A DNA stretch of 64,000 nt from sequence record LR535910.1; one strand, written 5' to 3'. Positions 13,952-36,132 of the stretch are shown piece by piece (the stretch's first letter is position 1; each line of letters starts with the position of its first letter). The notes under the pieces are model-generated. The model did not search any database. It was not told the origin of the DNA and saw only the letters and a list, made by a program, of their open reading frames with translations. The position numbers and the translations under genes were made by a program.

Positions 13952-16063
13952 ATGATACTGCGAAAAAACGATTGGCGACACTATCCGGGGGCGATTGTTG
14001 ACGATGTCACACCAAACGTGCACTTCCTTCAATTCGCCACAACACTACAAGGATTAGGTGTCCAGCATTGGTACGTCCACCTGGCATTACACAATCCCGA
14101 ACTCCGTGGTGTTGATCCGTTTAGCCCGGATTTAACACTCGAACAAAAAGCGATGATTGTTACGGAGTGTGCGGAAAACCCATGGTACTTCTTCCGTGAG
14201 TGTGTCCGGGTCCCTGCGGATGGTGTAAAGAACGGGATGCCGTTTCGTCTAGACCGCGGTAACTTTTCGATGTATTGGATTTTCTTCAACAACATCGACG
14301 CCGCTATCGAGTTTCTCCGTCAGCATGGTAAAACTGTCGGGATGTCCGCATTGCTATTGTGGCTGATGCGCTTCCTGGAGAACTCACGTACGATTCTTAT
14401 CACGAAGGGTCCTGCCCTGCGTGAAGAAACTATCAACAAAATGAAACAACTGCGTAACGCGTTACCGGATTATCTCTGGCCACATCACCCGGACGATCCT
14501 GATAACCGTGAGACATTTGCATGTCTAGCGCAGGGTAACAAACTTATCACCGGCATCGGTCAAAACGATAAGGAAGCTGCGAACGGGGTAGGCCGTGGAC
14601 TCACAGCCGGACGCCTGTTCTCGGATGAAGGACCGTTTACCAACAACATCCACCATATCCTCCCTGCTGCACTAGCATCGGGTACCGCGGCGCGTCGTAT
14701 TAACGAAGCCGAGGGTGTTCCATACGGCAACGTCTTCGCAACAACGCCTGGGGATTTGGCGACAGAAGAAGGCGAGTACATGTACAGCCTGATGACGTCG
14801 GGGATTTCGTGGGATGAACGGTATATCGACATTCCGACTCGTGCACAGCTGATTGACATGATTCGCAAAGGCTCTACTGCGAAGATTCCACGTATCATGT
14901 TCTACGTGAAATACAACCACCGCCAACTCGGTACCACGGACGAAGAACTCGCAGATATGATTGCGAACGCCCCAGGTACACCAGACCAAATCCGCCGTGA
15001 CTTCGGTGGTGAATGGACAACCGGTGGTTACAACAAACCGTTCTCAGGCGATGATGCAAGACGTATGAACGCCTCGCGTATTCGGGCAGCACAGAAAATT
15101 ATCTCTGCTTCCAACTACGTAACGGATTGGTATTACACCGAAGAACAGATGCTGGTTAAAATGCAAGACCGCCACATCATCGGTTTGGATACTTCCGAAG
15201 CCGTGGGACGTGACGCCATTGCCATGTCAATCGTCAACTCTGTCACTGCCGAATATGCCGGCAAGCTCACCGTGAACGAAACAAACGTCATCGGGTTTGC
15301 GATTCACTTAGCAGACTTCATGATCGAATATCCGAACACGGTACTCATTCTGGAACGACGGTCTACCGGCTCCTCGGTAGCAGATGCCATCATACTGCAG
15401 CTGCAATCTAAGGTTCGCGATTTGCATCGTCGTTTGTACGTGAAAGTGACCCAGGATTACTCAAGGAACGATGAACTTTACAAAGAGTTCCATCGTGGCC
15501 CTGTGGGCAGTCCAGAGCGCTTCTGGGACAAATTCCGTAAATACATCGGTTTCTCAACCGACCAGGATAAACGCCGTAAGTTGTATGGTGAAGTATTTAC
15601 CACGGCGTTGCGTCTTTCTGCGGACTTACTGCGGTCAGGCGAATTGATCGACCAAATCCTCGGTCTCGTCGAACGAAACGGGCGCATAGACCACCGTGCA
15701 TCCGGTCACGATGACCTGGTAATATCCTGGCTTCTGGCAATGTGGTTACTTCTGTTCGGCAACAACTTAGGCCACTACGGTATAAGTAACAGCCGACTGA
15801 TGATGCGCAACCGCAATATGCTCGGGGGCATGGCAGGTGAATTCGATGAAGAGGCTGCAGTCGAGGAAGAAGAAAAGCAACAACAACTGATGGGGCAAAT
15901 TGAAACGATGATTAGGCAGAGTCAAGTTGTAGCCGACCCGGTACAACAGCTCATGTACAAGAATCGTATTCAAGCGCTCGTCTCTCAACTCAACACTGAC
16001 GTTCGTAACGTCGCATCGATGGAAAGCTTGAAAGAGCTAATCCAACGACAGAGGATGAAGTGA
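13952..16063 (+). CDS. terL: Terminase large subunit
   Basis: Walker A LRQHGKT, Walker B LFSDEG, RNase H-like nuclease motifs GLDTSEAVGRD, LERRSTG and HDDLVISW; 703 aa. Confidence 0.92.
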   Translation: MILRKNDWRHYPGAIVDDVTPNVHFLQFATTLQGLGVQHWYVHLALHNPELRGVDPFSPDLTLEQKAMIVTECAENPWYFFRECVRVPADGVKNGMPFRLDRGNFSMYWIFFNNIDAAIEFLRQHGKTVGMSALLLWLMRFLENSRTILITKGPALREETINKMKQLRNALPDYLWPHHPDDPDNRETFACLAQGNKLITGIGQNDKEAANGVGRGLTAGRLFSDEGPFTNNIHHILPAALASGTAARRINEAEGVPYGNVFATTPGDLATEEGEYMYSLMTSGISWDERYIDIPTRAQLIDMIRKGSTAKIPRIMFYVKYNHRQLGTTDEELADMIANAPGTPDQIRRDFGGEWTTGGYNKPFSGDDARRMNASRIRAAQKIISASNYVTDWYYTEEQMLVKMQDRHIIGLDTSEAVGRDAIAMSIVNSVTAEYAGKLTVNETNVIGFAIHLADFMIEYPNTVLILERRSTGSSVADAIILQLQSKVRDLHRRLYVKVTQDYSRNDELYKEFHRGPVGSPERFWDKFRKYIGFSTDQDKRRKLYGEVFTTALRLSADLLRSGELIDQILGLVERNGRIDHRASGHDDLVISWLLAMWLLLFGNNLGHYGISNSRLMMRNRNMLGGMAGEFDEEAAVEEEEKQQQLMGQIETMIRQSQVVADPVQQLMYKNRIQALVSQLNTDVRNVASMESLKELIQRQRMK

Positions 16064-17817: not shown

Positions 17818-18951
17818 ATGATGAACTATGAACGTAAGCACGCGTGGCAAGAAAAGCTACGCACGGGGCAGATACATTCTGCCCAACAAGTGAAGATGTG
17901 GGTGCTGCCGCACGGCGTCATCTGCGAAATGGTCCAGGTCGGGGGATTACCTATTCTTCGAAATGGCAAATACGATTCGATGAACACGGTACTCGCGCGC
18001 TTGCTGGCCGATGCAGGCATAATGGGTACCGTGATTTTATATTCAACCGCAACGATTCCTCAGAACCTTTCTCGCTGGTTAACACATTGGCTTTCCAATG
18101 ACCCTAGCGAGGACGATCCGTGGCTACGTTCGATGACAGTGACAACAATGGGTCAACGGCCGACGAAACCCCTCCCATTCCAGGTCAATGTAATTGAACC
18201 AGCTATTCTGGAAGCGGGTGAAGTGTTTGAAGCAATCAAACATCGATCTCGCGATGTTAGCATCAGTCAGTTTCTTATCGAAGCGAATGATGTGACTTAC
18301 CGGCTGGAGCCTGTACGACGTATGGACGCTCGTATCGTCGACTGCACAGAGTTCGGTTATGTCTTGCGTACACAGGGCAACCATACCTTCCTGGCATCGA
18401 TGCTCTCTCGCCGCGTGCAGGGACAGTTAGCACACTACAAAGTGTCCCCTGCTGACCTCGTCGGTACCGACGTTAAGGTCGAATACACAATGTTTACCGA
18501 AGGGAATCGACTGTGTAATTTTAAGTCTCCGGTAGTCTATCGGAGTAAGGCACTTGATGCCTTAGGCGACCAGAATGTCCCGACATACGATGGCCCCTAT
18601 CCGTTTAAATCGCAAGCATCTGCAAACCGTGCGCTCCTTACGGTAACTCGGTGTAAACGCGCAGCGATCACACGGACCGACGGGGAAATTTATGGTAAGG
18701 ACACTGAGTCTGACGCAAAACTCTTTTCGTTCCGGCGTGGTGTGAAACCTGGATTGTATGCCGCGACGTTTGAAAAGGGGGATGACGTCGAGTTCTGGCA
18801 GTTCGACAGCGATTTTGCAGTAGATGCGATTGACCCAGATGCGTTAGTGAGTGTCATCACAGACCAAATCTTTTACGCGACGGGTATGAGCCTGCTGGAA
18901 ATCTTTTTAATGTACGATGCCAGATTACCTTCACAGTCAGTCAAAACGTAA
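17818..18951 (+). CDS. Hypothetical protein with a degenerate ATP-dependent DNA ligase-like (NTase + OB) signature
   Basis: 377 aa; AAGGAG SD; LRNGK, GTVILY, YRLEP and LVGTDVKVEY...FKSPVVYRS resemble ligase motifs, but KxDG is absent. Confidence 0.5.
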   Translation: MMNYERKHAWQEKLRTGQIHSAQQVKMWVLPHGVICEMVQVGGLPILRNGKYDSMNTVLARLLADAGIMGTVILYSTATIPQNLSRWLTHWLSNDPSEDDPWLRSMTVTTMGQRPTKPLPFQVNVIEPAILEAGEVFEAIKHRSRDVSISQFLIEANDVTYRLEPVRRMDARIVDCTEFGYVLRTQGNHTFLASMLSRRVQGQLAHYKVSPADLVGTDVKVEYTMFTEGNRLCNFKSPVVYRSKALDALGDQNVPTYDGPYPFKSQASANRALLTVTRCKRAAITRTDGEIYGKDTESDAKLFSFRRGVKPGLYAATFEKGDDVEFWQFDSDFAVDAIDPDALVSVITDQIFYATGMSLLEIFLMYDARLPSQSVKT

Positions 18952-18961
18952 GGAGCCTCCT

Positions 18962-19471
18962 ATGTTTACTGCGCCAACCGTGCAGGTGGGGCAAGGTCTT
19001 AACCTGGTGGTACACGACCAGCGGTTAATCGACCTCTGCGACACAAGCATAATTACTGCGATGATGGACCATAACCCTTTAGGTGACTACGGAAATACCA
19101 GCGAGATTTTGGCTGTTGCTGCCGTCCTCCGTCGTATTTACGGTCAAATAACCATCGTAGATCTCTGTAACTTCATTGACAACCACAGAGATTTAACTAA
19201 AGGGTTGGTCGCACTTACTCAAGATGGGGTGTCAAGTTTTGACAGTTCTCTTGGTAATTTCCTAGACATCGGTTCCGGGTTCGACTCCGGGCTAATGTTC
19301 ATCACTCGTGAACGCTACGTCGCCGTCTGGGAATTTCTGCAACGCATGGGTGTGCATGTTCCTGCAAAGATCATGCATTACCAAACTTACGACCTGAATA
19401 TTTTCGGGGAGCCAGGGTTATGGATAAAACCAGTACACCTTGGCCTTGATGGCTACACCATCAAGTGTTAA
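18962..19471 (+). CDS. Hypothetical protein
   Basis: AAGGAG SD before ATG 18962; 169 aa. Confidence 0.7.
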   Translation: MFTAPTVQVGQGLNLVVHDQRLIDLCDTSIITAMMDHNPLGDYGNTSEILAVAAVLRRIYGQITIVDLCNFIDNHRDLTKGLVALTQDGVSSFDSSLGNFLDIGSGFDSGLMFITRERYVAVWEFLQRMGVHVPAKIMHYQTYDLNIFGEPGLWIKPVHLGLDGYTIKC

Positions 19472-19479
19472 GTCACTAG

Positions 19480-19529
19480 GCGTACTCTCTTCGGGGAGTA
19501 CGCCAATCTTATTTTTTTTTATTTTTTTT
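19480..19529 (+). terminator. Intrinsic terminator
   Basis: GCGTACTCTC-TTCG-GGGAGTACGC followed by a long T-tract. Confidence 0.85.
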
Positions 19530-20059
19530 GGTTACTTTTTAACCAACCGGTTAAAGGGGTCTGGGAAGCATCAGAAAACGATTAGGTGGTATCGACGTAG
19601 GGTAACTCGTTTTTGGCAGTTTATCGTTTTCTAGGGTCAGTTACGTGCGTTTTAGAGGGGGTTATGTATCGTGACAGAGAATTTATTTTTGTCGGGGCGA
19701 GGAAATTCAGGGAATGGGGATTCAGGATTGTATGTTTTTTAACCAGTTATTAAAAACGCTCTAGAAAGCGCTAGAACGAGATTTGACTCAGACCCAGTAC
19801 ACTTGGGTTCCCTATACCGGAAAATCGCGCCAGCGGGCCGCTGAGAGCGCGAGAGTGCCATTCCCGTTTCGGTTCCGAGGTGCCGGCCGCGACCGGCGAC
19901 GACGATCACACGTTGGGTAGCACTTCGTGCCATGTCTGGGTGAAAACTGGATCGTTCTGTAACCGACACACACTGTCGGTTACTTACGAGTTCTTTGGGT
20001 TGTTTAACTCGCTCTAAAATCCCCCTTAGGGGATAATTTAATCTAATTCTCAAAATTTC

Positions 20060-20320
20060 TTTTTAAAACAATCACTTAGATTGTTTTTTAGATTGATCCT
20101 GTGGATCGGGTCGAAGACCCTTTCCTTATACGCGTGCGCGTGCGCACACCCGTATCCTCCAGGATCTTTTAAAAGATATATAATAATATTAAATATAATA
20201 ATACCTTTAGGTATTATATTTAATTATTATAATTATTTATATAAATAAATATATTAATATATTAAGATCTTAAAACGCGTGCAGGCGCGCGCGTGATCCT
20301 TATTAAGAGATCGTGATCGG
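20060..20320. other. Candidate replication origin or packaging-initiation region
   Basis: 109-bp tract (20167-20275) with only 7 G/C, built from abutting palindromes, flanked by ACGCGTGC boxes and 7 GATC sites in 224 bp; no gene present. Confidence 0.5.
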
Positions 20321-20467
20321 ACGGAAGTCCTAGTTTGGGTACCCTGTGTATTTTTTACGTGGTTTCCCTATCGTGTGTTCAGACCACCACACGACGTCCA
20401 AAACCCATAGCTTCGGTGGTCGCCTCCCTGGTCGGTAGACTCTGACAAGTCGACCCACAACACCAAC

Positions 20468-20490
20468 CCGTCCGGGGACGGATTTTTATT
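20468..20490 (+). terminator. Intrinsic terminator in the non-coding region
   Basis: CCGTCC/GGACGG followed by ATTTTTATT. Confidence 0.55.
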
Positions 20491-20544
20491 CCAACGACAA
20501 GCTCCACGAAAATCCCCGCAGAGGGACTCACTGCTGTGTGACTC

Positions 20545-20585
20545 ACCGGCTCCTGGACGCCTACGCCTCGAGCCGGTAATTTTTT
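20545..20585 (+). terminator. Intrinsic terminator in the non-coding region
   Basis: ACCGGCTC/GAGCCGGT followed by AATTTTTT. Confidence 0.55.
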
Positions 20586-20982
20586 GATTACGTGAGTTTG
20601 TTGTTATATGCGAATAGCGATTGACCGCGCCAATGGTCCAATCACTTTTAAACCCTGCACGCTAGGGCTCCAAGTCCTGGGATTGTTACCCAGGACGCTT
20701 TTTCGAAAATACCTACCGTGGTGTCTTCGACAAAGCGCAATCTAACACTGCGTGATTTATTATGTTCTGGAAAACTTTCGCCGTGGAACAGAACCGGTGA
20801 GCGTCGGCGGGGATTCCGACAATCACCACCCATTCAGGTACTCGGTAAATAACCGGGCTATCGGCTTAAACGTCGAGGGCCTCGTTGGCACTGCAAGCGC
20901 CGGTGCATCCAGGACCGAGTTAGCCGTGGCAGCTCCAGAGGACTGGGCAGCGGAGAGACGTCGTTGAACTTACCTCCGATAG

Positions 20983-21173
20983 TCAGTCGCTGATTCCGCT
21001 CTGGGGTGCGGCCAGATTAAAATCGAATTCGGCGTTGCGTCGAAGCGTGGGTCTGCGTGTAGAACCGCAGACTTGGGGGATAACTCCGATGAGGAGGTTG
21101 GTCCATATCTTGCCGGCTCGGAACAGACGAGAGGGGTGGGTACTCCCGTTGTGAAACGCCAGTACCTGGCTGA
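20983..21173 (+). ncRNA. Candidate structured ncRNA (about 190 nt)
   Basis: Closing helix TCAGTCG/TGGCTGA, inner TTCCG/CGGAA enclosing several hairpins; no ORF with an SD. Confidence 0.35.
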
Positions 21174-21176
21174 TTA

Positions 21177-21203
21177 AAATTTACAGATTCTGCGTGAGGT
21201 ATG
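21177..21203 (+). promoter_or_regulatory. Middle-type (AAAATTTAC) and late-type (GTATG) motifs upstream of 21228
   Basis: AAAATTTAC at 21177-21185; GTATG at 21199-21203. Confidence 0.4.
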
Positions 21204-21227
21204 ATAAACCAAACGGAGAATTAAACC

Positions 21228-21803
21228 ATGAACTTGTATCGCATCGGGTTTTACCGAAACGAGATGCCTGAATCGGTTTTGGTTGTCTTAGCCGAAAACG
21301 AGGAGCAGGCCAAATCCTTCTGGCCGGTTAGCGCAGAGCGTCCAGCGGTTGCGTGCTGCTACGACGGCGCTGTGTCTACCCCGATGGTTACGCCTGGGGT
21401 GGTTCTGAAGCAAGGCCGTTGGGATGATTATTCCCATCCCGGTTTGGAATTTGTTTCCGAATCCGCCAGACACACCTGGAATCTCACCACGGGTAAAACC
21501 AGAGTGTACTTCGGCCACCAAGCCAAGCAACCGTCGCTCATCAAGCTGTACCTGGTTTACAGCGACGTCGCTACCGAAGACTATGTCGACACCGGAATCA
21601 TCGTCGGGGCAACAACCCCCGAGGCGGCATTCGCACATTGGGACGGCGATAAACCCGGAATCGTTTCGGTCTGTGAACTACCACTTGAAGCCGGTTTGGT
21701 TACGAACATCAAGTGTGAGCAAGGCCAGGAGCTGACTTGGATGCGCCAGGATTACCTGACGGAAACGACATTCGAGTACACACCGAGGAAGGTGACCCAA
21801 TGA
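21228..21803 (+). CDS. Hypothetical protein with two tandem copies of a small phage domain
   Basis: GGAG SD; repeats MNLYRI...VVLAENEEQA and IKLYLV...IVGATTPEAA. Confidence 0.7.
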   Translation: MNLYRIGFYRNEMPESVLVVLAENEEQAKSFWPVSAERPAVACCYDGAVSTPMVTPGVVLKQGRWDDYSHPGLEFVSESARHTWNLTTGKTRVYFGHQAKQPSLIKLYLVYSDVATEDYVDTGIIVGATTPEAAFAHWDGDKPGIVSVCELPLEAGLVTNIKCEQGQELTWMRQDYLTETTFEYTPRKVTQ

Positions 21804-22291
21804 CCACGATAGCGTTCGATGGAAAAGTCTTGGCTGCTGACGGTCAGCTGACCCGCGGGTCGAATATCTGCAACCTGAACACCCAGAAGTTATTCATCTG
21901 CCCTTCTGACGAGGAATGGTGGATTACTGGTGAACGGATTGTGGCGTTCGGAGTAAGCGGTGACATCACAGGACAGTTGGCCTTGCTGGAAACTGTCCGC
22001 TTGAGACCCGGATACAAGGGGTTAACACAAAGCTCGCAGTTACCTGCGAAGATGGATTTTACTTTCCTGATGCTTTTGGCCTCAGGAAAAGCGATAGTCG
22101 GCGGAAAACGTGAAGACGACGTGACGTTGTGGTGGAGTGAAGCCACACCACCTCTGGCAACCGGAAGCGGTTACGAGTATGCGTTGGGTGCGATGAAGAT
22201 GGGCGCGAATGCGGTTCGTGCTGTTGAGATTGCGTCCGAATGCGATATCTACACCGGTGGTGAGATTAGCACTTACGAACTACGGAGGTGA
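21800..22291 (+). CDS. Ntn-hydrolase, HslV/proteasome beta-subunit-like peptidase
   Basis: Starts MTTIAFDGKVLAAD (N-terminal Thr nucleophile); ATGSG, ALGAM and D-I-Y-TGG motifs; ATGA overlap with the upstream stop. Confidence 0.75.
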   Translation: MTTIAFDGKVLAADGQLTRGSNICNLNTQKLFICPSDEEWWITGERIVAFGVSGDITGQLALLETVRLRPGYKGLTQSSQLPAKMDFTFLMLLASGKAIVGGKREDDVTLWWSEATPPLATGSGYEYALGAMKMGANAVRAVEIASECDIYTGGEISTYELRR

Positions 22292-35064: not shown

Positions 35065-36132
35065 TTATTTTTCTTCTAGCTCTGTCGTCAATGGGATAAT
35101 CAAATCCCGTTGGATAAAGTTATAGAAGGATTTGGTCAGACGTGTGAGGACTTTAGAGTCCACATAACGCGCCAAATCAACCAACATCGTACGTTTATGC
35201 TTTTCCATATTCCCCTGGTTGTATTGAAGACAAAACAGTGCCCAGTACCAGTTCACCATGTTCTGGTGCCAGGTGTTCTGCAGTGTTTGACCTGGTTCTC
35301 GAAAGACAATCAGTTCCAGTGCTGTGTGGCCTTCTTCATCAGGGTGTTGGAAGAACAATGGGATGTTGTTTAAGACTTGTCCCGGTAACGGGTTGGCAGC
35401 CAGTAGTTTACTACGGATGCCTTTTGCGTGCTTCACAGCTAAAGCTTGAAGCGGCGGAACAGGAATGACACGTAATGTTTCATCCGGTTCAATCTCTTTC
35501 CCGAAGGCTATCGCACGATGTATATTTACAAAGGCGATATCCATGTAGCTCGGCAACATGCGAGAGATCACATGTCGTTGGAGATACACAGGTGTGGCAA
35601 TAGGTTCGGTACCGCGACTGTAGTGCTGCTGACCTTTGACATATTGCCAAAGCAAAGCAACCAGGTTGATTTCGATCACCGTAACACCTCGGGGCCGTCC
35701 GTCACCGAACTTCCAATTGAGGTTGGTATACTCATGGTAGAGGTAACGTGCGGGGGTGTAGTCGCGGAACGAAAGGTCTGGATTTACTGGGCGGGCTACG
35801 AGAGAGATTACCTCATCTTGGCCCTGGATAAACTTGCTATTAAAGATTTGACCGTACTCACCAACAGACGTCAAGCGTAAGGCGTTACCGATCTGAACAA
35901 GTTTGCGACGGCAAGCCCATTCGATGTCTTCGTACTCTGGTTCACCGGCATAGCCGATGGCAGACAACACCTCTTGCAACAAATGGCCATTACCAGCACT
36001 GCGATTAAGCTGTTCGTAGTAGTTGCGTATACGCTGGCTGTTGTTTTTTACGTGAGCCGCTAATGTTATAGCGGAGGGGTCCGTGCTGTGACCCTTTATG
36101 GCCACTTGGTTTAACTCGGCTTGGCTGAACAT
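35065..36132 (-). CDS. Conserved protein divergent from chimallin
   Basis: AAGGAG SD before ATG 36132; 355 aa. Confidence 0.75.
   Translation of the reverse strand: MFSQAELNQVAIKGHSTDPSAITLAAHVKNNSQRIRNYYEQLNRSAGNGHLLQEVLSAIGYAGEPEYEDIEWACRRKLVQIGNALRLTSVGEYGQIFNSKFIQGQDEVISLVARPVNPDLSFRDYTPARYLYHEYTNLNWKFGDGRPRGVTVIEINLVALLWQYVKGQQHYSRGTEPIATPVYLQRHVISRMLPSYMDIAFVNIHRAIAFGKEIEPDETLRVIPVPPLQALAVKHAKGIRSKLLAANPLPGQVLNNIPLFFQHPDEEGHTALELIVFREPGQTLQNTWHQNMVNWYWALFCLQYNQGNMEKHKRTMLVDLARYVDSKVLTRLTKSFYNFIQRDLIIPLTTELEEK

Follow-up and report, generated by a model that had tools for sequence, protein, structure and literature searches.

An AT-rich, single-copy cis element conserved among SPN3US-like jumbo phages, and a candidate replication origin

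The stretch of DNA analysed here (64,000 nt of LR535910.1, hereafter the window) carries, at nt 20052–20362, a single-copy unit of about 310 bp to which a long AT tract (nt 20167–20275) belongs. This cis element is real, conserved and present in a single copy, and the literature searched does not describe it. Its most likely role is that of the DNA-unwinding core of a replication origin, a reading to which we would give a probability of about 0.45. A fuller version, in which it is the first defined origin of a chimalliphage, independent of the host initiator, with a 109-bp tract that is held between clamps of covarying GC palindromes, recognised by a phage factor and gated inside the phage nucleus by the Dam of the phage, is more doubtful and is put forward tentatively.

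The window derives from an SPN3US-like Salmonella jumbo phage of the genus Seoulvirus. Across the 1.9 kb compared, it matches SPFM4, SPFM11, SPFM13 and other Salmonella phages at 100%, and SPLA1a at 98%. The SPLA1a genome (240,348 bp) was the main reference for genome-wide statistics, which were computed on whole genomes of relatives. The element sits inside an ORF-free gap (nt 19472–21227) bordered on the left by a 184-aa ORF (nt 18917–19471) and on the right by a 191-aa ORF (nt 21228–21803), and the large terminase gene (nt 13952–16063) ends about 4 kb upstream of the AT tract. The corresponding gap in SPLA1a measures 1,753 nt, and this gap and the next one (2,044 nt, containing tRNA genes) are by far the two longest ORF-free stretches of that genome.

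Two genes upstream, on the plus strand, a 377-aa protein (nt 17818–18951) is annotated as hypothetical. It has the fold of an ATP-dependent DNA ligase (AF2 model, pLDDT 84.6), and its best Foldseek matches are the ligases of Chlorella virus, ASFV, T7 and T4 (E values of 3e-6 and up). In the family alignment, read by eye rather than by structural superposition, LPHG stands where motif I (KxDG) would be expected, and the adenylated lysine may therefore be missing. Its gene has very high RNA contig coverage. Both this protein and a 169-aa protein beside the gap are confined to the SPN3US-like clade; the latter matched no family and gave no usable model (pLDDT 53). An atlas look-alike had pointed to a DUF772 transposase N-terminal domain in the 169-aa protein (score 0.95), but neither Pfam, nor a PDB profile search, nor the model supported it. 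The 191-aa ORF at the other border (plus strand) is missing from SPN3US and from the phage of the RNA run, one RNA contig joining nt 21227 to nt 21800 with 572 nt skipped. It has no PHROG or Pfam family, and is an accessory insertion adjoining the gene of an HslV-like peptidase.

The AT tract is 109 nt long and 94% A+T, and a recount gave exactly the seven G/C of the preliminary description, all of whose quoted sequences were recovered at their coordinates. No other 100-nt stretch of the 64-kb window is as high as 78% A+T. When the 240,348 bp of SPLA1a were scanned, the tract was the sole 100-nt stretch of at least 75% A+T, and in the Asesino genome it was the sole one of at least 80%. By nearest-neighbour energies, the element region contains the genome-wide stability minimum among 100-bp duplexes in SPLA1a (z 8.6), Asesino (9.4), Huxley (6.8), Kwan (6.1) and Phobos (5.7), although in Kwan the minimum lies on the left motif (see below) and in Phobos the margin over the runner-up is slim. 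A DNA-unwinding element is expected to be the locally least stable duplex; the element region holds the global minimum in five genomes.

The tract is essentially a string of short palindromes. These are ATCTTTTAAAAGAT (nt 20164–20177), TAATACCT-TT-AGGTATTA (nt 20199–20216, which extends to 9-bp arms at nt 20198–20217), two perfect 16-mers (nt 20233–20248 and nt 20248–20263) and TTAAGATCTTAA (nt 20262–20273). Compared with dinucleotide-preserving shuffles of the tract, palindromes with arms of at least 7 are in excess (6 vs 1.45 expected, P=0.0025) and palindromes cover far more of it (67% vs 19%, P=0.001), but the longest arm by itself is unremarkable (P=0.27). The earlier label of a cruciform-rich region holds in part: short local palindromes are dense, but a single long dyad or cruciform spanning the tract was not consistently above shuffles across the 13 phages compared (described below). 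A perfect 10-bp hairpin noted earlier outside the tract is present at nt 19959–19983.

From left to right, the unit opens with an AT-rich motif, AAAATTTCTTTTTAAAAC..ACTTAG (nt 20052–20086, plus strand), which is conserved in four genera and overlaps a hairpin, AAACAATC/GATTGTTT. This is followed by a pair of GATC sites (nt 20095 and 20104) with the hairpin GGGTC-GAA-GACCC (together nt 20095–20120), the sequence of which is different in relatives. The left GC box (nt 20127–20149) contains 20 nt of strictly alternating purine and pyrimidine, inside which is the palindrome GTGCGC-GT-GCGCAC, and forms a direct repeat with the right GC box. Conservation is highest in the next box, TCCTMCAGGATCTTTTAAAAGA (nt 20155–20177), which holds the one GATC that is retained in all 13 phages. 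Within the tract, the central palindrome ATAATACCT-TT-AGGTATTAT (nt 20198–20217) has a fixed position and covarying arms. The right GC box, ACGCGTGC-AGGC-GCGCGCGT (nt 20275–20294), is a hairpin or palindrome of the form ACGCG..CGCGT; runs of ACGCGTGC on both sides of the tract had been described earlier and were found at nt 20130 and nt 20275. As single-stranded DNA, the right GC box pairs with the left one (z -4.8). Next comes a conserved right box, GTGATCCTTATTAAGAGATC plus GTGATC (nt 20293–20318), with three GATC sites and one match per genome in each of ten whole genomes. The unit closes with the motif TTTTTTACGTGG (nt 20351–20362, plus strand), which all four genera have 50–70 nt beyond the right box.

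Conservation in relatives had been proposed as a check on the element, and it was borne out. Thirteen phages, including an uncultivated contig of 237 kb, were compared at this locus; they belong to Seoulvirus, Erskinevirus, Machinavirus and Wellingtonvirus, and the unit is syntenic in all four genera. The order of its parts is constant: on the left the AT motif (with nt 20052–20079 as its shared extent), GATC with a variable hairpin, the GC palindrome box and a near-invariant box around CAGGATCTTTTAAAAGA, and on the right the AT tract (65–109 nt among the 13 phages), the ACGCG..CGCGT palindrome, GTGATCCTTATTAAGAGATC, more GATC, the TTTTTTAC motif and a transcribed region. The two boxes at the tract borders are near-invariant across the four genera. 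The palindromes behave differently, as their positions are fixed and their sequences are not. The left GC palindrome is found at -26/-27 from the anchor in 12 of the 13 phages, with a different sequence in each, and the central palindrome (arms of 6–9 bp, spacer of 2–3 nt) begins at +31 to +41 in all 13, with arm cores that covary (ACCT/AGGT, TCCC/GGGA, ATCT/AGAT or TATAT/ATATA). This pattern argues for selection on symmetry and position rather than on the letters themselves.

In the Erwinia phages the match at the DNA level is limited to about nt 20119–20320, and the neighbouring protein is only 48–60% identical. The element always lies downstream of the same gene pair, but the remaining flanking ORFs vary between genera. 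Relatives have one or two additional ORFs in the left flank, no decayed remnants of which were found in the left flank of the window. At the same syntenic place, Derbicusvirus phages carry a different tract of 78–80% A+T (CR5, L040:2700–2990; Phobos, L042:2230–2460; Derbicus, L043:2225–2380). Their version has a left box of G-runs and GATC (G6-ATC-AAG6), repeated ATGGAT/GAATGAAT words and a central palindrome of its own, TAATTGAT-nnn-ATCAATTA. The chimalliviruses pVa-21, Goslar, RAY, SL2 and DT01 have no comparable tract (no 60-mer of at least 95% A+T genome-wide), so that an origin of this kind, if it is one, would be a clade-specific solution.

All seven GATC sites listed in the preliminary description (nt 20095, 20104, 20163, 20266, 20295, 20309 and 20315) were confirmed, and seven in 260 nt is the maximum of the window, the mean being 0.63. 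In SPLA1a the GATC cluster of the element is the densest in the genome. Across the genomes that encode Dam, GATC is the most avoided 4-nt palindrome (observed/expected 0.29–0.40); the ratio is 0.09 in Phobos, which is without Dam. In ten of the 13 phages there are 5–8 GATC sites within about 325 nt of the element, where about 0.6 would be expected, and in the lineage of Caitlin, SNUABM4 and ChrisDB the cluster is down to 2–3 sites. The dominant contexts within the elements are GGATC and GATCC. A gene for a Dam-family methyltransferase (PF02086, E values of 1e-51 to 1e-61) was found in every one of the seven element-bearing genomes tested (nt 109432–110163 of the SPLA1a record). It is absent from two Derbicusvirus genomes, which have the GATC-poor variant of the element, and from Goslar, RAY, SL2 and DT01, but Vibrio phage pVa-21 has the gene and lacks the tract. 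As this co-occurrence may go back to one evolutionary event, it is a hint rather than a test.

Unwinding at an origin had been suggested when the element was first noticed, and this is strengthened by the genome-wide uniqueness of the tract, by the stability minimum in five genera and by the conservation of the unit as an island with covarying palindromes. The results from GC skew were mixed. With all bases and after correction for orientation, a switch in skew lies near the element in two genomes (ranks 3/120 and 4/123), but at 4-fold sites the best fits are 8–10 kb off in those two genomes and 40–75 kb off in three others. Skew was discarded as origin evidence, since the support from whole sequences is lost both at 4-fold sites and in three further genera. 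T4 uses recombination-dependent replication, and SPN3US-like phages may largely rely on it too, which also counts against the origin reading.

The closest bacterial parallel is oriC of E. coli and Salmonella, where conserved boxes likewise adjoin an AT-rich unwinding region and GATC sites are densely clustered within about 250 bp. The phage element differs in that it has no DnaA boxes, its AT tract is far longer and more extreme, and the methylase is the phage's own. Between -250 and +400 nt of the element, 12 of the 13 phages have no DnaA box within one mismatch, and a DnaA-like match at +385 in SNUABM6 is off-consensus and fails TTWTNCACA, leaving none of the 13 with such a box. Likeness to E. 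coli oriC did not reach significance: the best local alignment, which pairs the right box with a 13-mer (GATCTnTTnTTTT type), scored 24 against 20.7 ± 3.1 for shuffled sequences (P=0.15). T4 oriF and oriG and the primary origin of T7 resemble the element in having a promoter-like motif next to an AT-rich tract in a non-coding, transcribed neighbourhood; unlike them, the phage element has GC palindromes and GATC clusters on both sides of its tract, and its left flank is near-silent in RNA. Herpes simplex virus oriS and oriL, from the same realm (Duplodnaviria), share an A+T centre, flanking boxes containing GC and local hairpin potential, but the boxes of the phage are self-palindromic direct repeats, a long dyad does not reach significance, and a UL9-like protein is not known. 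An initiator was not identified, the 169-aa protein being uninformative and the ligase fold of the 377-aa protein not being an initiator fold.

If the element is an origin, it could work as follows. Negative superhelical stress or a bound factor would melt the 109-bp tract, and the GC palindromes, with their alternating purines and pyrimidines, would act as clamps that limit the bubble. The same GC palindromes, together with the invariant boxes, are putative binding sites of a phage factor. On the melted strands the short palindromes could fold as hairpins, at which the phage helicase and primase could load or prime. The phage Dam, by methylating GATC, may control the timing or licensing of firing, and transcription from the conserved flanking motifs may assist opening, as at the origins of T4 and T7.

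Transcription is also the basis of the first alternative, which is unlikely but has several observations in its favour. Here the element would be a transcription-control hub, i.e. a boundary, promoter and terminator that insulates the upstream operon and drives a non-coding RNA to the right, with the hairpins as terminators and the AT tract as an upstream element for activation or bending. To view the locus at the RNA level, contigs from RNA-seq of an infection by a related phage were aligned to the window; such contigs carry neither strand nor ends. Coverage is very high over the upstream gene pair (1e4–1e5), falls to 3.5e3 at nt 19340–19523 and then to 300/11. A terminator-like hairpin with 11 pairs and a T-rich tail (nt 19479–19504, plus strand) directly follows the 184-aa ORF and marks the end of this highly expressed operon. 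The ORF-free left flank beyond it (nt 19505–20051), where gene content varies by genus, is near-silent (depths of 300 and 11–18), and its contigs reach no further than the left edge of the tract (nt 20158/20163). To the right, coverage returns, with a contig depth of 2.4e3–1.6e4 over the ORF-free nt 20260–20995.

The right-hand region (nt 20351–21000) is both transcribed and structured. Two plus-strand terminator-like hairpins lie within the right flank (nt 20468–20481 and nt 20674–20696), which folds with a z of -4.3 on the plus strand and -3.3 on the minus strand. The better fold of the plus strand, these hairpins and the TTTTTTAC motif suggest that the RNA is read from the plus strand. No Rfam family matched within nt 18500–22000, and an nhmmer search of SPLA1a found no further copies. 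Together with the gap up to nt 21227, the region probably represents one or several undescribed non-coding RNAs. The TTTTTTACGTGG motif (1–3 copies per genome) is probably its promoter or start. Other copies of a TTTTTTACRWG motif in the genome are found only at about nt 36040 of the window (SPLA1a 27206) and at SPLA1a 233594; that at SPLA1a 27206 is conserved in Huxley (18465), and this may be a rare promoter class. On the other side, about 100 nt to the left of the tract, lies the conserved left motif, which occurs once in each of the genomes of SPLA1a, Asesino, Huxley and Kwan. It may be a promoter directed at the tract, although RNA contig depth is only low from there to the left edge of the tract.

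The proposed hub is favoured by the interruption of RNA coverage at the tract, by candidate promoter motifs conserved on both sides, by an enrichment of terminator-like hairpins in the gap (10 vs 2.4 expected) and by the folding of the right flank. Against this, a strong terminator already ends the upstream operon about 650 nt before the tract, and the tract, at 75–185 nt upstream of the putative RNA start (nt 20351–20362), was judged too far away and too long to be an upstream promoter element. The flanking motifs are not general promoters of the genome, and a similar tract is missing from every other transcription unit. A search for general promoter motifs found no multi-copy AT-rich motif, and the over-represented T-runs proved to be terminator tails. 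Control of transcription also leaves unexplained the GATC cluster, the GC palindromes, the position-fixed covarying palindrome and the uniqueness of the tract. The two functions may coexist, as they are combined in transcription-activated origins, and some role in transcription would be compatible with the origin reading.

A packaging (pac) site, also raised in the preliminary description, is less probable again. In this case the terminase would read the GATC-ringed boxes and make its first cut in the AT tract, from which headful packaging would proceed. In favour of this, the site occurs only once, the large terminase gene is about 4 kb upstream of it, GATC clusters stand on either side of a spacer of about 100 bp, the phage encodes Dam, and many GenBank records start or stop in or near the tract. 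The likeness is to the Dam-controlled pac of P1, where a spacer of about 100 bp likewise separates two groups of Dam sites and the phage brings its own Dam. Unlike P1 pac, the element lacks repeated TGATC[AG] hexamers (0–1 per element in the 13 phages), and the record ends are scattered (nt 20034, 20160, 20196–20212, 20259 and 20268). Neither a small terminase subunit nor an adjacent gene of the pacA/terS type was identified. Known pac sites are not, to our knowledge, marked by so long and AT-rich a tract (109 bp, 94% A+T).

The scatter is accompanied by loss of sequence, as several records are short of 37–224 bp of the tract. The SPFM2 record breaks at the central hairpin with a 17-nt overlap, and for another isolate one DNA contig runs through the tract unbroken. 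The SPFM libraries were made with Nextera XT and assembled with SPAdes, and the genomes were described as circularly permuted (PMC6614189); for the Erwinia phages, base 1 was placed by alignment to relatives (PMC6256631). The record termini are more probably Nextera or assembly dropouts, which their scatter and lost sequence fit, than physical DNA ends. What remains of the pac proposal is a shared opening. The records of Lh1B (OK428535) and JN03 (MT799840) are opened at the junction 20259/20260 with no sequence lost, that of SPFM17 (LR535914) starts at nt 20259, and in the search table EC001 ends at the same coordinate. The coincidence of Lh1B, JN03 and SPFM17 keeps packaging alive at a low level; it may stem from a start coordinate copied from a reference, from an artefact of the library or from a genuine preference for this end. 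The literature search found no analysis of packaging ends for Seoulvirus. A separate peculiarity of the SPFM records LR535901, LR535903–LR535908, LR535911–LR535913 and LR535917 is that they align as 12–31 short pieces per 0.9–1.9 kb, and that the ligase-like gene matches in them only as fragments, which suggests local sequence errors in these records.

Improbable, too, is a structural site of another kind, either a preferred place of hairpin or cruciform cleavage or of recombination, or an anchoring or segregation site in the phage nucleus. A recombination hot spot could seed recombination-dependent replication. The dense short palindromes and the ability of the left and right GC boxes to pair as single strands are consistent with such a role, and a RusA-type resolvase is annotated in related SPFM phages (PMC6614189). 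However, the failure of a long dyad to reach significance consistently across the 13 phages speaks against it, iterated partition-type repeats are missing from the element, and no link was found to a cytoskeletal or shell protein. A protelomerase target like telRL of N15-type phages is scarcely credible: the left box of Asesino and phiEaH2 does contain ATTATACGCGCGTA, a 14-mer that occurs within a perfect palindrome at the ends of many viral contigs of about 20–90 kb (which, from the hit pattern, we take to be N15-like linear prophages), but the match (14–15 nt of identity) is restricted to one lineage, the phage box has a dyad centre (GCGCGT/ACGCGC) unlike that of the tel palindrome, the box sequence is free to vary among relatives, and there is no long perfect dyad centred on the TACGCGCGTA core of the N15 site.

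The phage nucleus is a protein-walled compartment reported to exclude host proteins, and how replication begins inside it is the question on which the element bears. The preliminary description knew of no mapped origin for nucleus-forming phages; the literature search agreed, finding none for phiKZ-like or SPN3US-like phages and no other cis-acting genome site of nucleus-forming jumbo phages. In practical terms, the tract is a reproducible dropout or break point in Illumina assemblies of these phages. The element also provides a precise 310-bp target, with two invariant boxes that are usable as probes or bait for a binding protein. Should it prove to be an origin, it would open the way to replicon-type vectors and dosage markers for these phages, and would give a use for the Dam that they encode.
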